Shown piece after piece: positions 45,190-63,420 of a stretch of 64,000 nt of DNA. The notes beneath the pieces are model-generated. The model was given only the letters and a program-made list of their open reading frames with translations. It did not search any database and was not told the origin of the DNA. This DNA comes from Hyphochytrium catenoides (lineage: Eukaryota; Protista; Hyphochytriomycota), in contig FLMG01003519.1 in NCBI GenBank assembly GCA_900088475.1, positions 20,103 to 84,102 of the forward strand. Direction: 5' to 3'. How positions within the stretch are numbered: the first letter of the stretch is position 1; every line of letters begins with the position of its first letter. Position numbers and translations under genes: made by a program.

Positions 45190-46799
45190 CCTGCCTGAGA
45201 GACGAAAAGTGCTTACTGCTAAGAACTGCTAGCTCCGTGAAATCAGAGCTATAAAAGCTCACCACGCCTGTCCCCAACTGTCTACCAGCACACCCTAGTC
45301 ATCGGCAACGCGCATTAGGGAGAAGCAAAACCACTTGGCCTCGATACAATCTAGCGATAGGCGCTGCTGCCAAAAAGCTGCACCCGGTGAGGCGATGGCG
45401 CGATGGCAATGAGATGATCACCACAAGCAGCAAAAAAAATCTGAGGAAGTGTCAGCCACCCTAAAATAATAACGACATCGTCTTAGCGGCGGCAAATCCC
45501 ACTTCTTCAAGGTAAATACCATTTATAAGGACGTTAGCGGTACCACTGGCTCTGTTGAGATGTTAGCTTCAGGATATAATCGCTAGATTCGGCTGTCTCT
45601 GTAATGTTTTATTGGGATACCTGGAATACCTTGTGATGCTTGAAAGTGGTACGGTGCTGGGTTTTATACCGTGTAAAACCAGTGTGAGGTTGGTTAGTTA
45701 TAATAAACAGGGGGAAAATCGGGATGGCGTTGGGTTGGGGTAGAACTAGATACAGTTTGCAGGGAGAGAGCGTGAGGAAGGGAGATCAGGGGGGAGAGCT
45801 CGGCAGTGGGAGAGACAGAGCTATGCTGTTGTAAGAAGACAATCAAGACTGAAGGGTGCGAGTCAGAGGCAAGAGAAAGATGCCATAGGGAGACAGACTC
45901 TACTAACGCTGTAACATTATTAGACATCAGGAGCGCGAGACCCTTGAGGCCAACACAGATACCAAGAGATGCCAGCCTGTAAAATAGGGCAAGCAACACA
46001 CTAAAATTATAAAGGGGGAAAATTACTGCAACCTTCATAAGCCCCTGGCGTCACTATTATTAGACTACTTCAGTTCATATAAGGATAGAGAAATATTACT
46101 ACTTCCTTCCTAGGGTTGTCGTATCAGAACCGAACGGTTTCCCGCACCATTTCCCATAAAGTCCGTCGCCCTCTTCTTCGCCATCATCTCGCGGCTTCTT
46201 CAAGGATAAAAACCCTAAGATAATAAAGGCACAGAGATTATTGATAGAAGCTCCAGCTATGTTGGGCTCTCTAACTCCCTTCTGCCTTTGGCTTGAAACC
46301 TGCGGCGCTCTAACGTAGAAGGTGAAGCTGCAGGGGCGGTCGAGATGTGAGGACAAGAGAGTAGTTCTCTGGGCATCAGTTCGTCACTGACGTGAGCTTG
46401 TTGATGTCCCAGGTGCAGCAGGTTATCGTTAGACGTGATGATGGGTTCTTTCCCAAGAGGTAAGGATCTCCCGCTCAGTGCTTGACGTAGAAGGAAGTGC
46501 CAGCACAATAGGAGGAGTAAGGAAGATGCACTTGTTAGTTTTCATAGATTCAGCTGCGGACCGCGTTCCCATTGTATGCACGATTCCGTCCAGCCGATGC
46601 TACTTGTGCGAGATGGCAAAAACAATGAGTGGGTTTTCATATGCGTGCTGATTGATAAGCTTATTTTCAGCACCCATTGTAGCCTTCTTAACAATTAACG
46701 TGGTACATATGATTTCCTACTGCTATGCGGTGCCTTGACGGAGCTGAGGGACGGACAGATTCTTTCAGACTCCAGCCTTGCTAACGAAATTGCTTACGT

Positions 46800-49700
46800 C
46801 TAAGGCATTATTTTGTTGGACCGCCTCTGGAAGCTGTCGTACCTGCAGTATGAGAAGCATCGCTTTTAATAAATAATTGGGTATCACGGCGAAATGAGGA
46901 GCCACTTCCTGGCGAGTTCCCCAATGGTCAAAGCTCTTGTCCACCAGGGCTAAAATGGCCTCCCGTAGTTTGCATCCCTCAATATTCATAAAAAAGCGTG
47001 ATTTCATCCGCTTGAGAACTTTAGCTCTGGATGTGCTCAGGAAACATGGAGACGGAGAGTTATTTGATGTAAGAGCCACCATAGATAAGAGCTTGCTAGC
47101 GTTAGCCCTTGCGGCGAGGAACCCTGCGATGACTCGGTCCTTGAAGAGCTGATACCCGGCAGAATCAACTCCACCCATCAGGTCTACCATTTCTACCGTC
47201 AGCTTGAAGGGTGCGCTCTCCAAGCTGACCTGCCCACCTACCAGCAGAGTACCATAAGCAAGAAAGTACCGTGGAAAGTCACAACGTGAGGCGATGGTCA
47301 GCACATCCTGTACAACTGTCTCCTTTATCTTACCCGGCGCCATGCCCAAGACAAATCCGAAGTCGATTTGTATTAAGTGGCCATCCTTGTCAAGCATGAT
47401 GTTTCCATTGTGCCTGTCCTTGATCTGGAGAAAGTAACAGACAACACTGTATGCCGCCGTACTGTTGATAAAGTTCTCGCGAGCTCTCTCAAACTCAGCG
47501 GAGCCTTCAGGTCCAAAACGCTTCTCGAAGAAGGTCTTCCAAGCCGCCGTAATCGCGGTCATGCTTCTTGATTGAATCCAGTGAGTAAGCGTCTACCAGC
47601 GTCTCAATGAGCCCAATAGAAGGACCTGTGCAAACTATCCTGTGATAGCAGGGAGCAACCGTCGTTCGTCTGGCGAGTGAGCCACCGCTTCTAGGAGGGA
47701 CAGCAGAGCTCATCAGAAAGACCGCCCACCTGTAGGGTCTCAGCCACAGTGTGAGTTTGTTTTCGATGAAGATGGTTTGGAACATTTCGATCAGCTGCAG
47801 GATGAAGGCTTCCTGGCGCATATCGTCGAAGCTCTTCGCGATTATGGTCTGCATCCCCCATCCAGGAAGATGGGCATAGGGAGATTGGGCCCTGCATTTC
47901 GCAACCTATTTGAATGGGCTGATGAGTAAGTATCCCGATGGGTTTGTTAGCTATGGCTCCACCACCTTACTCTCCCAATCCTCCTCCTGTGCCCGGTGGC
48001 TATACACCTCGCTCTCGGGAGACGGAAAGGACTCTTTAAGCTTAACTCTGAGAGAGAGATCAGTGATCTTGTGAAGCAGATCCTCTCAATATGTGATGAC
48101 CTCACCCATCATCACCGGCAAGAAGTTTCTCCAAAGCGCCTGCTTGTTGGACTTCACTATCCAGCTCCTGATACTCCTCAGAGTAAATGCTAGGACTCTC
48201 GTCGCCGACACTGCCATTCCACATTGCACTAAGAACGTGTCGCAACCGCGCTAAGTTGACATGGCGATATTGATGTCAGTACTGAATTTGCGCAGGTTTT
48301 AGGGTTCATCATGAACTTCACATACCTGACCCCTCTGACTCTGCTTTCGCGGGATACTCTCCCTCCGTAGCTGGACCTGCCGTCTTGACGATACCAATCT
48401 GACCAGAAATGAACGGTGAGAGATGAGGTAAGCGTTACGGGCTTTTGAACTATCATCACAAGGCACTTACTTCTGCCACTGTGACTGCGCCGGGACATTT
48501 GTCTTCTATAGCGCTGTGGTCAGTAGATGAAGATACCTCTTTCACAGGACTTGAATATAAGTTCCGGCATACGGGCACATCGATGCATAAGACCTCGAAG
48601 GCAATTAGAGTCGGTGCCCTCGATCTAGTCGAAAAGACTTTGCTCTCGCTCTTGGCGACCCGTAAGATCTATTACACAAGAGATTCACCAATCGCAGCCC
48701 CAGATAACGCCACCTGTGAGACAAAGAGGAAGCAGACCGGCAAATAAAGCGTTTCCTGGTGGAGCTTCTCCTCTAAGTCGTCAAGTTTGCTTGGAAGGAC
48801 ACACTTGCGTTCGTCCCTATCCAGATGGCGGAGATCTTCAGCAATATCTGTGAGACGCTTGACAAACTTCATCATTCCTATGCAAAGGTGACGTGTCTAG
48901 GTGGTGCCATCAACCGCGATGACAAGCGACAAATAAGAGTAATACCTTCAAACTGCAGGTCCGGGTATACATTTTCTTCTGTCAAGTTGAGGCTGCCTGT
49001 GGAAATTGGTGAATGTGAACTAGATGTAATGCCTTCCTGAGCTAGTGCGGTTAATTTATAGTCCAAATGCCTGGGATCCCCACTGGGATAGGAAGTTAGC
49101 TTTGGCAGGAAACCTCGGTTCACTCACAGGAAACACATTCCGATCCTTACCGTAATGGCCGCCTGAAGCCTCTGTCCTCGATAGGATAGCCATCCTCTGG
49201 GTAAATACTGAGCGCCCCAGCAAGGGTCCCCTGCTTCTCAAGGTCCAATATCGTTGCGTGCAACCGTACAATCTCCTACAACGAGCACAACCGCTCTTTA
49301 GCAATGGCGCCTGCAGGTCACGTCCATCCTGTCATCATAAATAGGTTTACCTCCTTATTATTAGCTAAGAGCCAGTCCCAGAATAAAATTGACGGCAAAT
49401 GGGCCTCAAATGCTCGTATCACGACCTCCATCTCGCCAAAAACGCCTGCCATATGCTCCATTTGGTGCTGCGGTACATCATCCATCCAAAGCCCCGAGAT
49501 AATATTGAGATGGCTAAATTCCTCCAGTGGCACGGCCATCATCACCAGGAAGAGGGAGAAATGAGCGAGGTAAACGTCATTCCTTTCTACGGCATCGTGA
49601 TAAGTTGCTAGGAACTCCCAAGTAGCCAGTAGTCGCAGATGGACGTTTGTCCAGATGACTGCTCGTATGAAGTAAGCGTAAAGAATGAGCTGCAGAAGAT

Positions 49701-53579: not shown

Positions 53580-53630
53580 GAAGAGGGTTTAACCACTGTC
53601 AAGGAAGAGGTTTTAATCACTGTCAAGGAA
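53580..53630. repeat. 24-bp tandem duplication (2 copies, 2 mismatches)
   Basis: gaagagg(g/t)tttaa(c/t)cactgtcaag x2. Confidence 0.9.
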
Positions 53631-54035: not shown

Positions 54036-55835
54036 TTAGAGCAAGCTAATATCCTTCGTTGGAGTAGTGGCGGAGGCACCAGCACATCTGCTGTAAGAGT
54101 TCTCACGAAGACTGGAAGAAGATGGAGCCGCTACGTATTGGTGTTGCGGCATCAAGCTGTTACCCGCCGTAGTCATTTCGCTACCGCCGCTCTCTTTGTG
54201 CTTGCGATCAGATCGACATCGTCGGCAACACACACAGCTCGAACAGCAATGGCAAGGGACCCAGCCAACAAGGAACAGCAGTATTGCCAAGCACACATAG
54301 CCAAGGACAATCCACAAAATTGTGCGGAACTGCTGCTTGCTGGGAGGGCTCAGTAGTACCAAGGCACCTCCAATGACCAACAAGCCGGGCAGGAAGATAA
54401 AGGAAAGGCTTTTGAGAAGCACCACCTGCCAGTATTCCCCACGGCTATCAGCTTGAGGAAGCGAGCTCCCTTCTTGTTCCTCAGGCAATGCTTCGGGTCG
54501 TTTGCGGTGGATCATGTGCCCTAACAATAGTCGAGTCATACAAGCGAACAGATAGAACCCAGCCATGACTAGGTATACCACCGCGGCTGTCCGGCTAAGA
54601 GGCCGCAGTGCCCAATATTGAATACGCATAGAAGCTTCCGTCCCTAAGGAGCTGCTAATGAAGTCCCATTCTGTAAGGTAGATGACGCCACATATAACAC
54701 CAATTAGTGCACAGCCCAGAGCAACGGCTAATGTTTCTTGCAGGAACCCTCGCGATCGACTCGGGGTCAACACTAGTGCCAGTACGAACACGAAGACGGT
54801 GATCACAATTAGCACTTCTGCTGCTCTGAGAGCCGCAAAGAAGGTGTCCTGGGTGGACTCCAGAGCTGTAGAGTTGGTCAGAGGAATAGTCCAGTTCACA
54901 AGGTTAAAAAGTTGTGAGCTATTCGAATAGCCTCGTTCGTCTAACTTTGCGGAAACCTCAGTGGCGACTGAGGTGAGATTCAGTATCAGTGTGCCGCCAC
55001 CTTCTGAAGTGACTATGACCTCGTTGGGAGAACTGCCTGTGAGAATAGCCAGGAACAACTCATGTGCCAGTCCGTTAGCCACACGCCAGGCCTTGGGGAA
55101 GCTCGGAGAATAGAGAACATCGGTGAGCACATCAGTGGCTTCTTCAGACAGCTGGTCGCACGGGGGACAAGGATCTGTGCTTCCAGATGCTTCAGATACC
55201 GTCTTAGCCGCAGACGGGTTGCTGTCGATTGCCTTCTGGACTGCCGTTGCAAAGGTAAAAATAATGGCATCAAGTATCTTTGGATCAGTAGCCATCGGTG
55301 CTGTCATGGACACCCACGACGAAGTGTGCACCAAAAGTGTTCGCACATACCATCCTGTCATTGCCAAGGGCACAGCGATGACGCCGATGAATAGGATGCT
55401 CCAGAACAGGCATAAGCGAAACCAACCCCAGACTGACGGTAGCCACCAGGATGGTCCTTTGCTGTCCATCCTCGTGGTGCAGCATCCGCGGGGTCTGTCA
55501 TATTGAAGGTTGGGTCCACTACCACCCTCCTGTTGAGAGCCATCTTGTTGCTGGTGGTCCTTTGGGCTACTCTTGTTGGCCCCTTCCTGGTTGCTAAGAC
55601 TAACAAATGCTGTTGCTCCGTCTTCGATATCATGAGTATTGTCAGCAGAACGAAGAGTGACGGCGATACTGCTTGACTCGGGTTCCTCTCGTCTATTGTT
55701 GCAGGTAGTGGTGGGAGGAGAGAGGAGCGGATTCCAGATTGTAACCGGGTCCCTGGCCGTCAAACCCTTCTCTTCTTGCCCACATACATCGCCATCGCCT
55801 GGCCCCCGTTCTCCACTACTCTGACCTATCTTCAT
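54036..55835 (-). CDS. Intronless multipass membrane protein resembling an actinobacterial integral membrane protein family
   Basis: 599-aa ORF with ~6 TM segments. Core: AVPLAMTGWYVRTLLVHTSSWVSMTAPMATDPKI...VLYSPSFPKAWRVANGLAHELFLAILTG...GTLILNLTSVATEVSAKLDERG. Confidence 0.8.
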   Translation of the reverse strand: MKIGQSSGERGPGDGDVCGQEEKGLTARDPVTIWNPLLSPPTTTCNNRREEPESSSIAVTLRSADNTHDIEDGATAFVSLSNQEGANKSSPKDHQQQDGSQQEGGSGPNLQYDRPRGCCTTRMDSKGPSWWLPSVWGWFRLCLFWSILFIGVIAVPLAMTGWYVRTLLVHTSSWVSMTAPMATDPKILDAIIFTFATAVQKAIDSNPSAAKTVSEASGSTDPCPPCDQLSEEATDVLTDVLYSPSFPKAWRVANGLAHELFLAILTGSSPNEVIVTSEGGGTLILNLTSVATEVSAKLDERGYSNSSQLFNLVNWTIPLTNSTALESTQDTFFAALRAAEVLIVITVFVFVLALVLTPSRSRGFLQETLAVALGCALIGVICGVIYLTEWDFISSSLGTEASMRIQYWALRPLSRTAAVVYLVMAGFYLFACMTRLLLGHMIHRKRPEALPEEQEGSSLPQADSRGEYWQVVLLKSLSFIFLPGLLVIGGALVLLSPPSKQQFRTILWIVLGYVCLAILLFLVGWVPCHCCSSCVCCRRCRSDRKHKESGGSEMTTAGNSLMPQHQYVAAPSSSSLRENSYSRCAGASATTPTKDISLL

Positions 55836-56199: not shown

Positions 56200-57250
56200 G
56201 ATATGGGTCTAGAAGAAAGAGGTAAGTGAGAAGCAACAGCACACACACGAACGCTTGGTGAGAGCTGCATTCTTCAGAGATACAGCGGTTCGTGAGGAGA
56301 AGGAAGAAGGAGGGACAGGACATTGTTGACAGCTGGGATGGCGGCAGCTGCCCACCCAAACAGCGGCAGCAAGCATCATCACACCACCCACCTATCGCCA
56401 CTACTCCTACCTAACTTCCTTCTTCTTCCACCTCTCTGCCCTTTCTATCGAGCAAGAGCCTTGTTCTCCACTGCCTTCCGGCCCTTCATGGTCTCACAGC
56501 AGCCAGCGTCAGACCGCTGTCTCTGGGTCCTCCTCCTCCTCCTCCTCCTTCACCCTGCCAACCAAACGACAGCAGCCGTACCGCCAATCCATGCAGCTCT
56601 TCTTTTTGCTGCTGCTGCTGCTGCTTCTTCGCTCCTCCTCCTCCGTTTCTTGCTCTCCTTCGGTGCTTTTTACTCCTACTAACAACAACAACAACAGTAC
56701 ACTAATAAAGACAGGCCAAAGTGTCACACCACAGCAAGCAGCAGCAGGTTCACTCAGAGGTGGTCGATGGGGCGCACAAGGAATTTGTTGATGAGGAAGA
56801 CGAAGGGTGCAGAAGGTAGGCAGGGCGGGCGCAGCTGCAGCAGGAGCACCAGCGACAACAGCAGCCAGAATCTGGTGGGCTGTGCTGGGCTTGCGAAGAC
56901 CAAAAAAGACGGAAGACAAAGCAGCAGAAGAAGTATGTCGTCTAAGGAGGCCAGAGGGTCAGCAGCAACAAAAGAAGAGTCGATGAGGAGGAGGAGAAGG
57001 AGTTGGCAAGCCAGCGCTGGCACGCCAAGAAAATGAGCAGGCAGCTGCCTCGCAACCTTTGCTGGTGATTTGTCCTTAGTTGGCGAGGAGACGACGCATA
57101 ATCTTAGTTGAAGATCCTTGTGCGTGGTGGTAGTGCTTCGAAGATCAGACATCTCTTCCAGAACGCTTCTCCATGTTGTGAGGATTGTGATCCTTTTCAA
57201 AGTAATAGTAGCATTGTGGGCGCTGGTGGTAGAGAGAAGGAGACAAAGAT
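56200..57250. repeat. Low-complexity intergenic tract with (CTC)n, (GCT)n, (AAC)n, (GAG)n microsatellites
   Basis: For example ctcctcctcctcctcctcc ~56529, gctgctgctgctgctgct ~56608 and aacaacaacaacaac ~56681. Confidence 0.8.
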
Positions 57251-57663: not shown

Positions 57664-58692
57664 ATGTTGCCCTCATCACCTAGAATCCCATGCCCCTCGT
57701 GTGGGAGGTCCATGGACGAGGTCGAAGGGCAGCATCGCTGCCTAGTCTGTCAACAAGGAGCCACGACAGACCCACCACCGCTATCTGACGGCTTAACGAC
57801 ACCAGAACGGACTAATAACAAGCCTTTGATGAACACAGCCACCACCATCACGCCCTCATCAAAGGACAGTGAGAAGACCAAGGCCAATATGATTAGTGAC
57901 CCTGGCTATCCTCCTTCTGACATTATGGCGGCTCCACCAGCACAGATAATAGCAGCACCGGAACAGGAGTCGATGATGACAGGGCCAACCCAGCTTCCGC
58001 TGGCCCCAGTTGTTTACGTGATGGTTCCTCCTCATCAGTCACTTCCAGCCGAGCAGCTCCAACCTCTGCCTAAGCGAGAGTGTGATGAACAAAAGTACTG
58101 GAAACCCTATACGTACGCTTGGCGGGCCGACCTGTTTGGCTGCTTTGACCATATTATCCCAAACTGCTGCGTAGCGTATTGGCTGCCGTGTATCACCTAT
58201 GCGCAGGTCAACTCGCGGATGGGTCTTCTCTCCTTTGGATGGTCGGTGGTGCTCTCGTTAACGACGTGGGCAGGAATAACGGCTGGCATCGTTATGTGGG
58301 CCGTCAAAGATTGTTACTACAGCGAAGTCTACGATCAATCCACGGGAGTATTCCTCTATTCCTACTACGTATGTGACTATGACGCTGTCAACTACATTGG
58401 CATAGTCCTTGTTTGGCTCTTCTTCCTGATCTTCATGGCCCTTCTTGGCTGGCAGCGAGTGGTTATCGTTAGAACCTTGGTACTTCCAGGAGACCCCTGC
58501 ATGGACGTCTGTCTGGCGACGCTCTGCCCATGGTGCTCCTTGGCTCAAGTTGCTACTCAGGTTGGCTCCTACAAAGAGGGCAGATGTGGTTTAGGGCCTG
58601 CACCACTTGCACGACGAGACGGATTCCAAGGAGGAGCTTATGAGACGCATCCCACGTACGCACCTCTTGCCACTCCTGGCGCTGTTGCATAG
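57664..58692 (+). CDS. PLAC8 (Cys-rich, PCR/FWL-like) membrane protein with N-terminal CxxC-CxxC motif, intronless
   Basis: WRADLFGCFD...CCVAYWLPCITYAQVNSRMG...R..IVRTLVLPGDPCMDVCLATLCPWCSLAQVATQV. Confidence 0.9.
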   Translation: MLPSSPRIPCPSCGRSMDEVEGQHRCLVCQQGATTDPPPLSDGLTTPERTNNKPLMNTATTITPSSKDSEKTKANMISDPGYPPSDIMAAPPAQIIAAPEQESMMTGPTQLPLAPVVYVMVPPHQSLPAEQLQPLPKRECDEQKYWKPYTYAWRADLFGCFDHIIPNCCVAYWLPCITYAQVNSRMGLLSFGWSVVLSLTTWAGITAGIVMWAVKDCYYSEVYDQSTGVFLYSYYVCDYDAVNYIGIVLVWLFFLIFMALLGWQRVVIVRTLVLPGDPCMDVCLATLCPWCSLAQVATQVGSYKEGRCGLGPAPLARRDGFQGGAYETHPTYAPLATPGAVA

Positions 58693-59671: not shown

Positions 59672-60325
59672 CTAGACTCCATCTGATGGATGGCTTACCG
59701 CCACATAGGGAGCAGCTACCTCTTGGTCCTCAGGAGTTCTCCGGACATCTTCTGCGACCCCCTGCTTAGGCAATCCCGCTGCCTTCCTAATGTTGTGATG
59801 CTTGTAGCTGTAGATAGCACACCAAAGCGATCCCAGAAAGCAAAGTGCAGTCAGGAAAGTGTAGACTGTGGCGACACGTAGAAGATCACACTTTGGAATG
59901 TGTGCACTGTCCAGTTTGTCAGATATTTGACTTTCCGCTGACGCACCAACAGAGCCAGTGGGGAGGCTAGCAAGAGCAGCGTCAATCTTATCTCGGTAGT
60001 AGTCACAGAACCTAATGAAATTGTTGGCCGCCAAGCAAACTCCAATGATGGTTAGGGAGAGAAGGAAAGAGATGTCCATGAAGATTGCCAAGTCTGGATG
60101 AAAGTGATGATGCTTGCTGCAGGTGGTTGCCAGGATCCAAACCGTCATGAAGATTATTGTCAAGCCACCGAAGGCTATTGCAGAATACACCGGACTGAGC
60201 TCGGACTGGTAGGGTGCACCATTGAGTCCAGGCGCGGCTGTACAGATTACTATCACTGCGCACACCCATGCAAGCACACGAAAGCACAGGGCGCATTTCT
60301 CGGATGAAGCGAGCGAACGAGACAT
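59672..60325 (-). CDS. MARVEL-like four-TM membrane protein, intronless
   Basis: LCFRVLAWVCAVIVI...; four hydrophobic helices; IFMDISFLLSLTIIGVCLA; C...C loop before LLRVATVYTFLTALCFLGSLW. Likely ATG at 60325. Confidence 0.75.
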   Translation of the reverse strand: MSRSLASSEKCALCFRVLAWVCAVIVICTAAPGLNGAPYQSELSPVYSAIAFGGLTIIFMTVWILATTCSKHHHFHPDLAIFMDISFLLSLTIIGVCLAANNFIRFCDYYRDKIDAALASLPTGSVGASAESQISDKLDSAHIPKCDLLRVATVYTFLTALCFLGSLWCAIYSYKHHNIRKAAGLPKQGVAEDVRRTPEDQEVAAPYVAVSHPSDGV

Positions 60326-62463
60326 TTTCTTCAGACTGAAGCGAGATCTGAAAAATAAGCGGAGTTTGGGGCTTGAGACGGTGCAGAGGAGACACGCTCG
60401 AATTATTGGCACTGAAGAAATTCAATAATGAGGCTGGAAGAGGATCTCGAGAGAGAGGAGGCTGTTGTTTGCTGGCAAGACGACCTACGGTGGACGTGTC
60501 TGAACCGTCAGACATTCTCACTCCTTTGGTCAGACATGTCCCAGGGATGATATATGACGGAGCTTATGCCGCTCAGCGCGGACACTTCATGTTGATAGTA
60601 AGGATTGAGCAGGCAGAGATAGTTCCAGCGGCGCGGAGACAGGGCTAGATGCTTTCAGTCTTATTGATCTACCTCTTTCATAGCGAACACTGATGCTGTT
60701 TTCTGTGCCCTCCCACTATTTCTACCTTAGCGCAACAGCTGCTTTGTTCACACTTTGCATGCGAACGAGGTGATACCTTTAGGCATCATCACCGCTAGGA
60801 ACACTTTCGTTTAGCTTAGAACGAGGACGGCCGCCGAGAAAAAAGAACATTGAGAGGCTGCAGAAGCTATTCGCAGATGCTTGCTCAGAAGAAGCTCGAC
60901 CAGTCGTTCTAACACTCAAAGAGCAGAGTTCTGTCTCGTCTTCGTACCCGATCTTGGCATGATGCTCTAAGTAGATCTTCTATCATCGATGTGAGAAGAC
61001 AAGTTGGTGAATTTTCTTGCTGTATATCATTTGGCATTAACGCCAGTGATCGACAGTGTGGAGGTAGAGCAAAAAAGAGAAGGATAGGACAGAAACCCTC
61101 CAACATCTAGTCGCTGTGACAGCTCCACACCGTTGTCCTCACCCCAAGCGCGTTATGAAACGCAGCTTACTCTCAACTTCAACTTTCTTTTCTCTCAGCA
61201 GGAACATCGGTTCTATTGTAGCAGCCTTACATGGGCAGCGTTCGCAGATGAAGATCCCACCCCACCTCCTGCTGCATTGCCCACAGTGGTTGTTGATGAC
61301 TGAGTTAGAGTGTTGTCGGCTGTGAATGATGATGCGGCCCTGCACAGAGACAGGCTGGGCCTGGAGTGGTGCGAGGAATCGCTGTCGCCTTGCAGTGCCG
61401 GATCAGGTGACTGGTGCTGACGCCTGTGACTTTATTAAGGGGAACGCAGCTGGGGAACGATGGGGCGATGATCTCGCAGCTGCCCAGGTAGCTTGGGACT
61501 AACGCTATAAAAGGTCCCTCCTACATACAGTCGTCGTTGCGGTTTGAACCTCTTTGTATCCCTACAAGTACAACTGTACCATTTTCTGGGCTTCCTACAA
61601 AATAATACAAGACCTTTTACGAATAATTGTTGAACAAGTTAACCGTAAGTACAACACACCGTACCAAAGATACAGGGGTTTTGCCAAAACATGTCTCCTC
61701 GCTTTTGTTATCTGTTATCTGTAGAACCATCACAGCCTAAAACTACTTCCTAGTATACTAGTAAATAAGAGATGCCTTTTCGCTCGTTATTATTATAGCG
61801 TGTCCTTTGATGTTAACCTCTACCTATTTTTAGTGGTTAGAACTAGGGGTTCTAAGTTGGGAGACCAAGGGACGAACTGGTGTAAGGGCAAAGTAAGAAC
61901 TACGGAGTACTAGGAATTGGAGTACTTGAGGAGCGAACAACCTGGAGGTTGGACTCTACATTGCCTTAGGAATAACCCTTGGTATGTATGATGCCTTGCA
62001 CCTCATAGTCTTGGCCTTCTAGAATACCCTCTCTAGACAAGCTGGCTCCCTCAGCTTCCTGCTGGTTAATGAACTGCTGCAGCTATGATGAGGATGAGCA
62101 CCTCGTGTGCCATACCTGGCTACCTTCTCTCTCCAGCAGAGGTAGAAAATCCAACCTTTCCTCCTGTTTGGCAACAAAGACTGCTGGGCCTGTTATCACC
62201 AAGCAATGGTACTTCGTTTTCCTTACCTCCCAGACTGGACAAAGCTTCTTCCCGCCACGGACAAGTCCAGACCCTCGGGCAGGGCAAGCCACGGGATGAT
62301 CGTGACAGCGAAGGCATGCAGCAAGAGTCTGGGTTCTTCACCTTCCGTCGATACTCAGGTCTTTTTCCCGATAGTACTCATTATCCCACTTGTCGGCCTA
62401 TCTTATAGCTGTAGTACTCGACGCCCTCAAGCAGAATCGAAGCCAAATACCATCACTGCTACT

Positions 62464-63420
62464 ATGGCATCCTATCACAGTTTGGAGTCGTTTGGCGATT
62501 ACCTGGTCTCCGTAAAAGGACATGCTACTACAGAGCTTTTTGGAACGTACGAAGTTCGGATACAGACTGGAAGAGGCCTGGTATGGTCCGTCTCTCATAG
62601 GTTTGCAGATTTCGTGAGTCTGCGCCAACAACTTATGGAAAGGCTCAGAGTTCATGCGCTTAGGCATCACGCATGCCCATGTAATCTGGAGCTTCTCCGG
62701 AAGGAGCTCCGCTCCGCTTCTATTTTGCCATGGCGAAGACCCTTCGGCTCCAGGAGTGCTAAGGTGATTGACAGAAGGAGCTCCAAGCTGACGAAGTATC
62801 TGTGCAACCTCCTCAAGTTAATCTCCGTCCACATCAGCATTTCTCGCTGTTATATTGTGGAAGAGGCGATAAGTACGTACCTGAGGTCCTTCATCGACCC
62901 GGATGATGCGTATGTTGGCAAAGACAATCGTCGCAGGGCGGCAGAGAAACTGCTGCGCTCCTCTGCACTACATTGTACCAAAGACCGAGGAGGAACTCAA
63001 ACTTATGAAAGCAGGATTAGCTGTGTAATCTGTTGGGAGCCTATCCACCGGAGCTGTACACCACTTCAAGATCTATGCATATCAGAGAGTAGTAAGAATG
63101 TTGTTATGAATGTGTCTTCTTACAGGGAACCAGACTCCAAGAGGTTAGCTCGTGAAGGTTTCGCCTTTCAAGAGAGACATCGGCCCGCGGTTTCTGATGT
63201 CCCCAAGAAAGGGCAGTGCTCCCTGAATGGAGTCACGAGACTCTTGAGACTAGACAACGCGACTACAGAAATAGAGGAGGAGGGAACTTCGGGCGAGCCA
63301 CTAACCGCCACCACCGTTGTCATCCTGCGCTGCCAGCACATCTTTCATGAGCCCTGTCTTCTGCGCTGGCTAGAAACGCATAGTACATGTCCTTTGTGCC
63401 GTCAAGATGTTTACCAATAA
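62464..63420 (+). CDS. PX-domain + RING-H2 protein (RING split by a long insert), intronless
   Basis: PX motifs TYEVRIQ..WSVSHRFADFVSLRQQL..LPWRR..VIDRRSSKLTKYLCNLL. RING: CVIC...LRCQHIFHEPCLLRWLETHSTCPLCR. Likely ATG at 62464; the ORF is open from 62206. Confidence 0.85.
   Translation: MASYHSLESFGDYLVSVKGHATTELFGTYEVRIQTGRGLVWSVSHRFADFVSLRQQLMERLRVHALRHHACPCNLELLRKELRSASILPWRRPFGSRSAKVIDRRSSKLTKYLCNLLKLISVHISISRCYIVEEAISTYLRSFIDPDDAYVGKDNRRRAAEKLLRSSALHCTKDRGGTQTYESRISCVICWEPIHRSCTPLQDLCISESSKNVVMNVSSYREPDSKRLAREGFAFQERHRPAVSDVPKKGQCSLNGVTRLLRLDNATTEIEEEGTSGEPLTATTVVILRCQHIFHEPCLLRWLETHSTCPLCRQDVYQ

Follow-up and report, generated by a model that had tools for sequence, protein, structure and literature searches.

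Within a 64,000-nucleotide stretch of Hyphochytrium catenoides DNA (contig FLMG01003519.1, positions 20,103 to 84,102 of the forward strand; hereafter the window), an intronless open reading frame (ORF) at 54036..55835 on the minus strand encodes a protein that we regard, at a probability of about 0.8, as the product of a genuine nuclear gene originating by horizontal transfer from a mainly actinobacterial family of membrane proteins. This reading is anchored on the homology of the protein to that family, the phyletic distribution of its relatives, the embedding of the gene among eukaryotic ones, its native composition, and its predicted topology and fold. In the list of open reading frames it runs from ATG to stop over 599 amino acids plus the stop, without introns; an open frame of about 600 codons in DNA of 50% G+C is far beyond chance. 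An earlier sequence-only reading had quoted several strings from it, and WYVRTLLVHTSSWVSMTAPMATDPKI, LYSPSFPKAWRVANGLAHELFLAILTG, GTLILNLTSVATEVSAKLDERG, the cysteine run CHCCSSCVCC and the sequons NLT, NSS, NWT and NST are all present in the 599-residue translation. Hydropathy marks six membrane segments (TM1 to TM6, for transmembrane) at residues ~139–159, 338–356, 369–387, 415–437, 477–495 and 506–524. The loop between TM1 and TM2, which we call the ectodomain, spans 178 residues and holds four of the five sequons (N286, NLT; N305, NSS; N314, NWT; N321, NST), the fifth being N87 (NKS).

Searches with the ORF against Pfam, NCBIfam and the sequences of the PDB returned nothing above threshold, and matches to TMEM132_C, Prominin, FxsA and sarcoglycan were rejected as sub-threshold noise. 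An exact-sequence look-up of the ORF product gave no existing record. A word-index search of 5.8 billion proteins recovered a single match, the protein P0001 (E 2.3e-8; BLASTP 23% identity over 301 residues), which, used in turn as a query, retrieved 38 relatives. The named ones belong to Agromyces, Leifsonia, Microbacteriaceae and Streptosporangiaceae, are annotated as 'integral membrane' or hypothetical proteins and carry no Pfam domain; nor did any Pfam or NCBIfam model match the seven bacterial family members that were run. Aligned with hhalign to the ORF, a profile of 30 family members matched at 98.4% probability (E 5.8e-15, 266 columns). Together with BLASTP, this places the homologous core at residues 140–412 (54600..55418, minus strand), with homology beginning at about residue 135–140, in keeping with the family likeness that had been proposed for residues ~150–420. 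An exhaustive phmmer search with residues 120–599 against 1.84 billion cluster representatives (clusters at 50% identity) yielded 777 proteins at E≤1e-3, 60 at E≤1e-10 and none at E≤1e-30, several of the bacterial matches aligning through TM6 (query positions up to ~408 of 480).

Identity of the ORF to bacterial members is only ~23–29%, with a best bacterial phmmer E value of 1.2e-17 and, for the bacterial protein P0036, a BLASTP identity of 28% over 240 residues (E 2e-18). Because the best identities in the phmmer search reach only ~28–33% and no match falls at or below 1e-30, the searched collection holds no close ortholog, eukaryotic or bacterial. A consensus computed from the real sequences reads W.R....DTD.YV.TVAPLA.DPAVQ ... 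S..F...W..ANR.AH.Q.VA.LTG ... G.V.L.L ... V...L...G, which is essentially the actinobacterial consensus that the sequence-only reading had given. From the profile match and this computed consensus it follows that the uncharacterised integral membrane family proposed for Actinobacteria is real, with the ORF as a divergent member.

The family is broadly distributed. We scanned GTDB (one genome per species) with the back-translated degenerate motif T-D-x-[YF]-V-x-T-x-x-P-L-x-x-[DN]-P-x-[VI], which recovered at least 120 loci, all of them, among the matches listed, titled as an Actinomycetota organism or metagenome-assembled genome (MAG); a hidden Markov model of the family confirmed 118 of the 120 listed. 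Their genera include Streptomyces, Kitasatospora, Leifsonia, Agromyces, Microbacterium, Nocardioides, Nocardia, Rhodococcus and Arthrobacter, and Acidimicrobiia and Thermoleophilia are also represented. One of these loci, from a Rhodococcus MAG (L062, NZ_JBAQEO010000465.1), bears a Gloeocapsa/Cyanobacteriota label that apparently stems from a genus homonym: its record describes a high G+C Gram-positive organism, and it groups with Nocardia and Rhodococcus. A feature search of the ESM Atlas with the core alone returned Actinomycetota clusters and one cluster commonest in Chloroflexota (scores 0.90–0.91), the latter being the sole exception among named relatives that are otherwise all Actinomycetota. 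Overall, Actinomycetota contribute members from no fewer than 25 genera and from three classes, and Chloroflexota are represented as well; given that Chloroflexota cluster, the family is actinobacterial-dominated and probably not exclusive to the phylum.

Only two eukaryote-type members were recovered, the ORF itself and a protein designated P0039. Among the best 150 of the 777 phmmer matches, which were the ones inspected, P0039 is the sole eukaryotic-looking relative, and the other low-GC matches look bacterial. The proposal of an acquired bacterial gene is thus borne out by significant bacterial similarity and by a patchy eukaryotic distribution of one other copy; the searches revealed neither a broad eukaryotic family nor a lack of bacterial relatives.

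P0039 is the top phmmer match of the ORF (E 3.6e-23; BLASTP 27% identity over 310 residues, E 3e-33). It lies on a 3416-bp Logan contig (ERR10900108_49259, locus L003) that also carries, at L003:3-1049 on the minus strand, a UTP10/HEATR1-like (U3snoRNP10) fragment in a single 349-residue ORF running off the contig end, and this gene is restricted to eukaryotes. G+C content on the contig dips to 0.46 between genes versus 0.57–0.58 within them. Like the ORF, P0039 begins with a disordered stretch of ~120 residues and has a juxtamembrane CC pair ahead of TM1; its amino-acid usage leans toward AT, and it contains seven sequons. Three sequons (NLT, NWT and NS[ST]) occupy the same alignment positions in both proteins, and their membrane bundles share the motifs SLG, SRTA and MAG.Y. 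They differ in that P0039 keeps the family motif D-T-D and, at 456 residues, stops after TM4 with a Pro-rich tail, lacking TM5–TM6 and the cysteine cluster; its contig ends 9 bases past the stop, and a spliced continuation is possible. A word-index search with an alignment of the two proteins re-found only P0001 and missed P0039, a sign of insensitivity probably caused by low-complexity words.

Two phylogenetic trees were constructed, both unrooted: a quick one of 97 rows and a more careful one of 52 rows under a site-heterogeneous model (LG+C20+F+G4 with posterior mean site frequencies). The ORF and P0039 are sisters in both, with a Shimodaira–Hasegawa approximate likelihood-ratio (SH-aLRT) support of 100 and a stem of 1.39 substitutions per site in the former, and an ultrafast bootstrap of 100 with an SH-aLRT of 99 in the latter. 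In the 52-row tree the bacterial protein P0047 adjoins the eukaryotic pair (96/87), and a split with the same support leaves named Actinomycetota on both sides and the pair on one. A tree-independent measure came from columns where 60% or more of the bacteria have the same residue and the state shared by a given pair occurs in under 5% of them. By this count, the ORF and P0039 share six rare derived residues (W174, T178, M181, L188, Y386 and T399), whereas either protein shares at most three with any of 104 bacterial sequences (means 0.51 and 0.39) and, of 809 bacterial pairs drawn at random, just 2 reach five. On the strength of the pair support and the rare-residue count, we infer that the ORF and P0039 likely had a single eukaryotic origin.

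The main alternative, that bacterial genes entered the hosts of the ORF and of P0039 independently and that long-branch attraction together with convergent sequons and cysteines produced their pairing, is unlikely, and it is on this ground that the phylogenetic points weighing against our reading have to be met. Two long branches do meet, as the tree tool warned, and both proteins are atypical in amino-acid composition. The attachment point of the pair shifts, from near Acidimicrobiaceae at a support of only 41 in the 97-row tree to P0047, itself a long branch, in the 52-row tree. When each eukaryotic protein was left out in turn, the ORF fell nearest P0047 and P0039 elsewhere, neither placement being supported. 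Since the trees are unrooted, nesting of the pair inside bacteria is not provable from them, and sequons and cysteines could converge under secretory-pathway selection. Set against independent entries are the six shared derived residues, the retention of maximal or near-maximal pair support under the site-heterogeneous model, the three sequons at identical alignment positions, and the fact that the two proteins are each other's best match, ahead of the best bacterium.

The donor can be named only as an Actinomycetota-dominated family. The sequence-only reading had pointed to Actinobacteria as the source; the named relatives agree with this, but the placement within or near Actinomycetota shifts between trees, and P0047 serves as a lead. 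Its locus (L124; GCA_031549175.1, JAVBQH010000112.1) is a MAG contig of 57% G+C that also carries corrinoid-related genes (B12-binding, RACo), a polysaccharide-synthesis flippase and an ABC (ATP-binding cassette) transporter.

Comparison with the bacterial members separates the ORF into a core shared with them and a set of additions, all on the minus strand. The N-terminal extension (residues 1–120, 55476..55835) is of low complexity, predicted cytosolic and without bacterial counterpart, and it ends in C118 and C119 ahead of TM1. TM1 (residues 139–159, 55359..55421; hydropathy peak 2.47) is a predicted signal-anchor helix with its N-terminus inside; it aligns with TM1 of the bacterial family and lies within a long helix of the AlphaFold model. 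The helical ectodomain (residues 160–337, 54825..55358), predicted to be extracytoplasmic or lumenal, carries the four sequons already mentioned, and is followed by a bundle of five helices, TM2–TM6 (residues 338–524, 54264..54824), seen in both hydropathy and the AlphaFold model. Past TM6, on its predicted cytosolic side, lies the juxtamembrane cluster CHCCSSCVCCRRC (residues 528–540, 54216..54254), which contains 7 of the 19 cysteines and is a candidate S-acylation site. The Ser-rich C-terminal tail (residues 541–599, 54039..54215) has no bacterial counterpart, and no homolog aligns to it.

Measured against a baseline of 104 bacterial sequences, these additions, of which the sequence-only reading had named the disordered N-terminus, the sequons and the cysteines, are real and unusual. 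The residues preceding the ectodomain number 159 in the ORF and 141 in P0039, against a bacterial median of 52. Ectodomain sequons number four and six, respectively, against a bacterial mean of 0.6 (three or more in 3 of 104), and cysteines 19 and 5, against a mean of 1.2 per protein. The ectodomain itself has kept its length, at 178 residues versus a bacterial median of 176. Counts of Lys plus Arg in the loops fit an orientation with both termini inside, yet are not decisive. In this orientation the long loop would lie outside and the cysteine cluster at the cytosolic face of TM6. N-glycosylation of the ectodomain sequons and probable S-acylation of the juxtamembrane cysteine clusters are both predictions from the protein sequence.

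Conservation within the family is concentrated in the ectodomain. In an alignment of 106 sequences, all near-invariant columns fall there and none in the TM bundle. The ORF keeps eight of these nine positions (T171, V175, P180, F246, W250, H258, L298 and G302), the ninth being a conservative change, L181M. A helix motif F-x3-W-x2-A-N-x3-H, with W invariant and F and H present in at least 90% of sequences, is represented in the ORF by F246, W250, A253, N254 (the consensus residue) and H258. The motif that follows TM1, T171-S-S-W-V-S-M-T-A-P-M-A-T-D-P in the ORF, retains its T, V, P, D and P and differs from the family by D to S, Y/F to W, T to M and L to M; S, W and I variants are rare in bacteria, and P0039 shares the W and M.

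Structural modeling with AlphaFold gave a core model (predicted local distance difference test, pLDDT, 80.4; predicted template-modeling score, pTM, 0.71), with the helices of the TM bundle present, and an ectodomain-only model with a pLDDT of 85 and a pTM of 0.75. In a shape search of the ESM Atlas with the core model, the best matches were four uncharacterised clusters, 100% bacterial and commonest in Actinomycetota, with template-modeling scores of 0.51–0.62 by query and 0.47–0.74 by match over 278–303 aligned residues, which lends the family assignment separate support. One Atlas cluster of the same fold contains SHOCT in 49% of its members, a hint of occasional fusion. Against solved structures, the ectodomain gave nothing convincing (best Z 6.5, Foldseek E >1, profile-to-PDB E 0.05), and the whole-core model nothing by Foldseek (E ≥0.2), with a best Z of 10.3 that lies under the noise level for helical bundles.

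The location of the near-invariant residues, all in the ectodomain, leads us to favor, tentatively and with low confidence, a conserved activity of recognition or binding on the extracytoplasmic or lumenal side, with the six helices as an anchor, over solute transport. That this functional mode rests solely on where the conserved residues lie belongs with the points that count against our account. The opposite arrangement, with an accessory ectodomain attached to a six-helix bundle that works as a transporter or flippase, is improbable. It draws on a weak resemblance to the transmembrane domains of type I ABC exporters (Z 10.3 at a root-mean-square deviation, rmsd, of 6.5 over 153 residues; Z 10.2 at 5.1 over 161) and on an ABC ATPase neighboring 4 of 73 bacterial loci. 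Z values near 10 are those just described as under the noise level, and TM2–TM6 contain no near-invariant polar residues in the 106-sequence alignment. Gene neighborhoods across the 73 actinobacterial loci are likewise not conserved, with no partner present in more than 8 of them. The commonest bacterial neighbors are uncharacterised small membrane proteins of the DUF7144, DUF6325, DUF6350 and PLDc_N-SHOCT types; examples of neighbors are found at L119:1-543, L040:903-1544, L048:1273-1740 and L032:7053-8000.

On the same adverse side stand several features of the ORF that might suggest a transferred gene since fallen silent, or an unexpressed and functionless frame. The most conserved motif of the family, D-T-D, is degenerate here, reading H-T-S. 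Coding-potential scores are also weak: codon-usage signals are faint in this genome, the in-frame score of the ORF barely exceeds those of the other frames, and its relative synonymous codon usage correlates with that of the neighbors at 0.14, a value from a small sample without a baseline. For the N- and C-terminal additions, frame 0 scores best, though weakly. A relic is nonetheless distinctly unlikely, in that a frame of 599 codons has stayed intact despite ~1.8–2 substitutions per site on its branch, with all but one of the near-invariant family residues kept and host-specific additions in topologically sensible places, while the D positions of D-T-D vary in bacteria too (N, S, E and H were seen).

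The direction of the transfer, from bacteria into a eukaryote, would be reversed or removed if the family were an ancient, vertically inherited eukaryotic one lost nearly everywhere, or if it had passed from a eukaryote to bacteria. The unrooted tree permits a root on the eukaryotic stem, and the prokaryote-style gene calling behind the large protein collections would miss intron-containing eukaryotic homologs. Both versions are decidedly improbable in the face of 777 bacterial clusters from at least 25 genera against two eukaryotic sequences, and of the well-supported split that places named Actinomycetota on either side, with the eukaryotic pair falling on only one of them. Two metagenome scans, the first with patterns that proved spurious, derived from aligned disordered N-termini, and the second with core patterns, detected no eukaryote-type relative, their sensitivity being limited to exact patterns. 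Viral contigs scanned with bacterial-type and with eukaryote-type motifs gave no matches either, so there is no sign of a viral vector.

The surroundings of the gene are those of host DNA. The window contains no runs of N, and the ORF has a G+C content at third codon positions (GC3) of 0.535, compared with 0.52–0.56 in neighboring genes. Its dinucleotide distance (delta*) from the rest of the window is 0.067, where the window's own mean is 0.054 and its 95th percentile 0.085. Eukaryotic genes occur within 2 kb of it on one side and ~6 kb on the other, on gap-free DNA. They are a PI3/PI4-kinase gene (46765-47854, minus strand), which contains introns and whose catalytic domain is split between at least two ORFs (profile positions 4–43 in 47507-47854 and 113–230 in 46765-47562); a PLAC8 family gene (57664-58692, plus strand, 342 residues); a MARVEL domain gene (59672-60412, minus strand, 246 residues, just under the Pfam cut-off); and a PX plus RING-H2 gene (62206-63420, plus strand, 404 residues). 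The last three appear as long single ORFs, so the absence of introns is weaker evidence locally. The contrast that had been drawn between an intronless ORF and an intron-rich window therefore holds for the ORF and the kinase but not for PLAC8, MARVEL and PX-RING. Many short minus-strand ORFs extend from the kinase gene to ~51.7 kb.

Scans for repeats and against Rfam found no mobile-element or RNA feature at the ORF locus. Between the ORF and PLAC8, at 56528-57002 of the window, lie (CTC)n/(GAG)n runs that form imperfect inverted repeats, with low-complexity poly-Glu, poly-Ser and poly-Leu ORFs, and ~400 bp downstream of the ORF stop, at 53580-53627, a 24-nucleotide unit is tandemly duplicated at 92% identity. 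Bacterial contamination or a chimeric assembly, which the intronless frame and the bacterial relatives might bring to mind, is very unlikely to the point of being negligible, and the transfer is not recent, given the native composition, the lack of gaps and the eukaryotic flanks, to which are added eukaryote-only additions fused in frame and identities to any bacterium of no more than ~30%. Actinobacterial genes typically have a GC3 far above that of the ORF.

Bringing these strands together, the horizontal-transfer reading would have a bacterial gene encoding TM1, a helical ectodomain of ~176 residues and five further TM helices move into a eukaryotic nuclear genome. The transfer would be old, because the ORF has diverged so far from bacteria (~23–29% identity), its composition is host-like, and even its sister copy is only 27% identical. 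Thereafter the protein would have gained the disordered cytosolic N-terminus of ~120 residues and the C-terminal tail, together with cytosolic membrane-adjacent cysteine clusters and N-glycosylation sequons limited to the ectodomain, while TM1, acting as a signal anchor, would direct the ectodomain toward the lumen of the endoplasmic reticulum or the cell exterior. More speculatively, one ancient transfer may have founded a eukaryotic family of glycosylated, S-acylated six-pass proteins in at least two deeply divergent protists, with an ectodomain fold lacking a solved relative and a conserved W/H site serving the same extracytoplasmic recognition in both domains of life; this fuller picture we hold to be possible and no better than doubtful.

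Bacteria-to-protist transfer is well known, and clean polytopic cases in which the refitting is legible in the sequence are less common. Here the refitting would comprise a signal-anchor topology, sequons on the lumenal face only, cytosolic cysteine clusters and disordered tails, each as predicted from the translation. A literature search on horizontal transfer of actinobacterial membrane proteins to protists found nothing relevant. The case also draws attention to a large Actinomycetota/Chloroflexota family that comprises 777 clusters and has no Pfam or NCBIfam model, solved structure or known function. That two eukaryotes have kept it through heavy divergence, with the invariant residues of the ectodomain intact, suggests that the ectodomain is useful in very different membranes. 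The interest lies mostly in this unexplored family and in the clear signature of adaptation.

Compared with its bacterial relatives (Agromyces intestinalis FLP10_12995, Leifsonia sp. AG29 and the other proteins P0001-P0038 and loci L004-L123), the ORF has the same arrangement of TM1, a ~176-residue ectodomain and five TM helices. It shares with them the F-x3-W-x2-A-N-x3-H helix, the P-[LM]-A-x-D-P turn after TM1, and the G-x-[VL]-x-L-x-L and L-x3-G motifs. It differs in its N-terminal extension of ~120 residues, cysteine clusters, C-terminal tail and four ectodomain sequons, and in having H-T-S for D-T-D, W174 for Y/F and M181 for L. YhgE/Pip and EsaA-type proteins, common in Gram-positives, likewise consist of one N-terminal TM helix, an extracytoplasmic domain and five C-terminal TM helices, with an ectodomain several times larger than that of the ORF family. 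The likeness is one of gross topology only, and no YhgE/Pip or related model in Pfam or NCBIfam matched the ORF or the seven family members.

With the transmembrane domains of type I ABC exporters (EfrCD, 7ocy; ABCD1, 7vwc; TmrAB, 6raf) the ORF shares long helices protruding past the membrane (Z 10.2–10.3), but the superposition covers less than half of the residues at an rmsd of 5–6.5 Å, and the ORF has no nucleotide-binding domain. Documented bacteria-to-protist transfers of membrane proteins include the nucleotide transporters of microsporidia and diatoms and the bacterial-type rhodopsins of dinoflagellates. The ORF differs from these in that its donor family is without known function and its eukaryotic members so far number two sequences, and it resembles them in what the transfer would have achieved: the establishment in a nuclear genome of a polytopic membrane protein from bacteria, routed via the secretory pathway.

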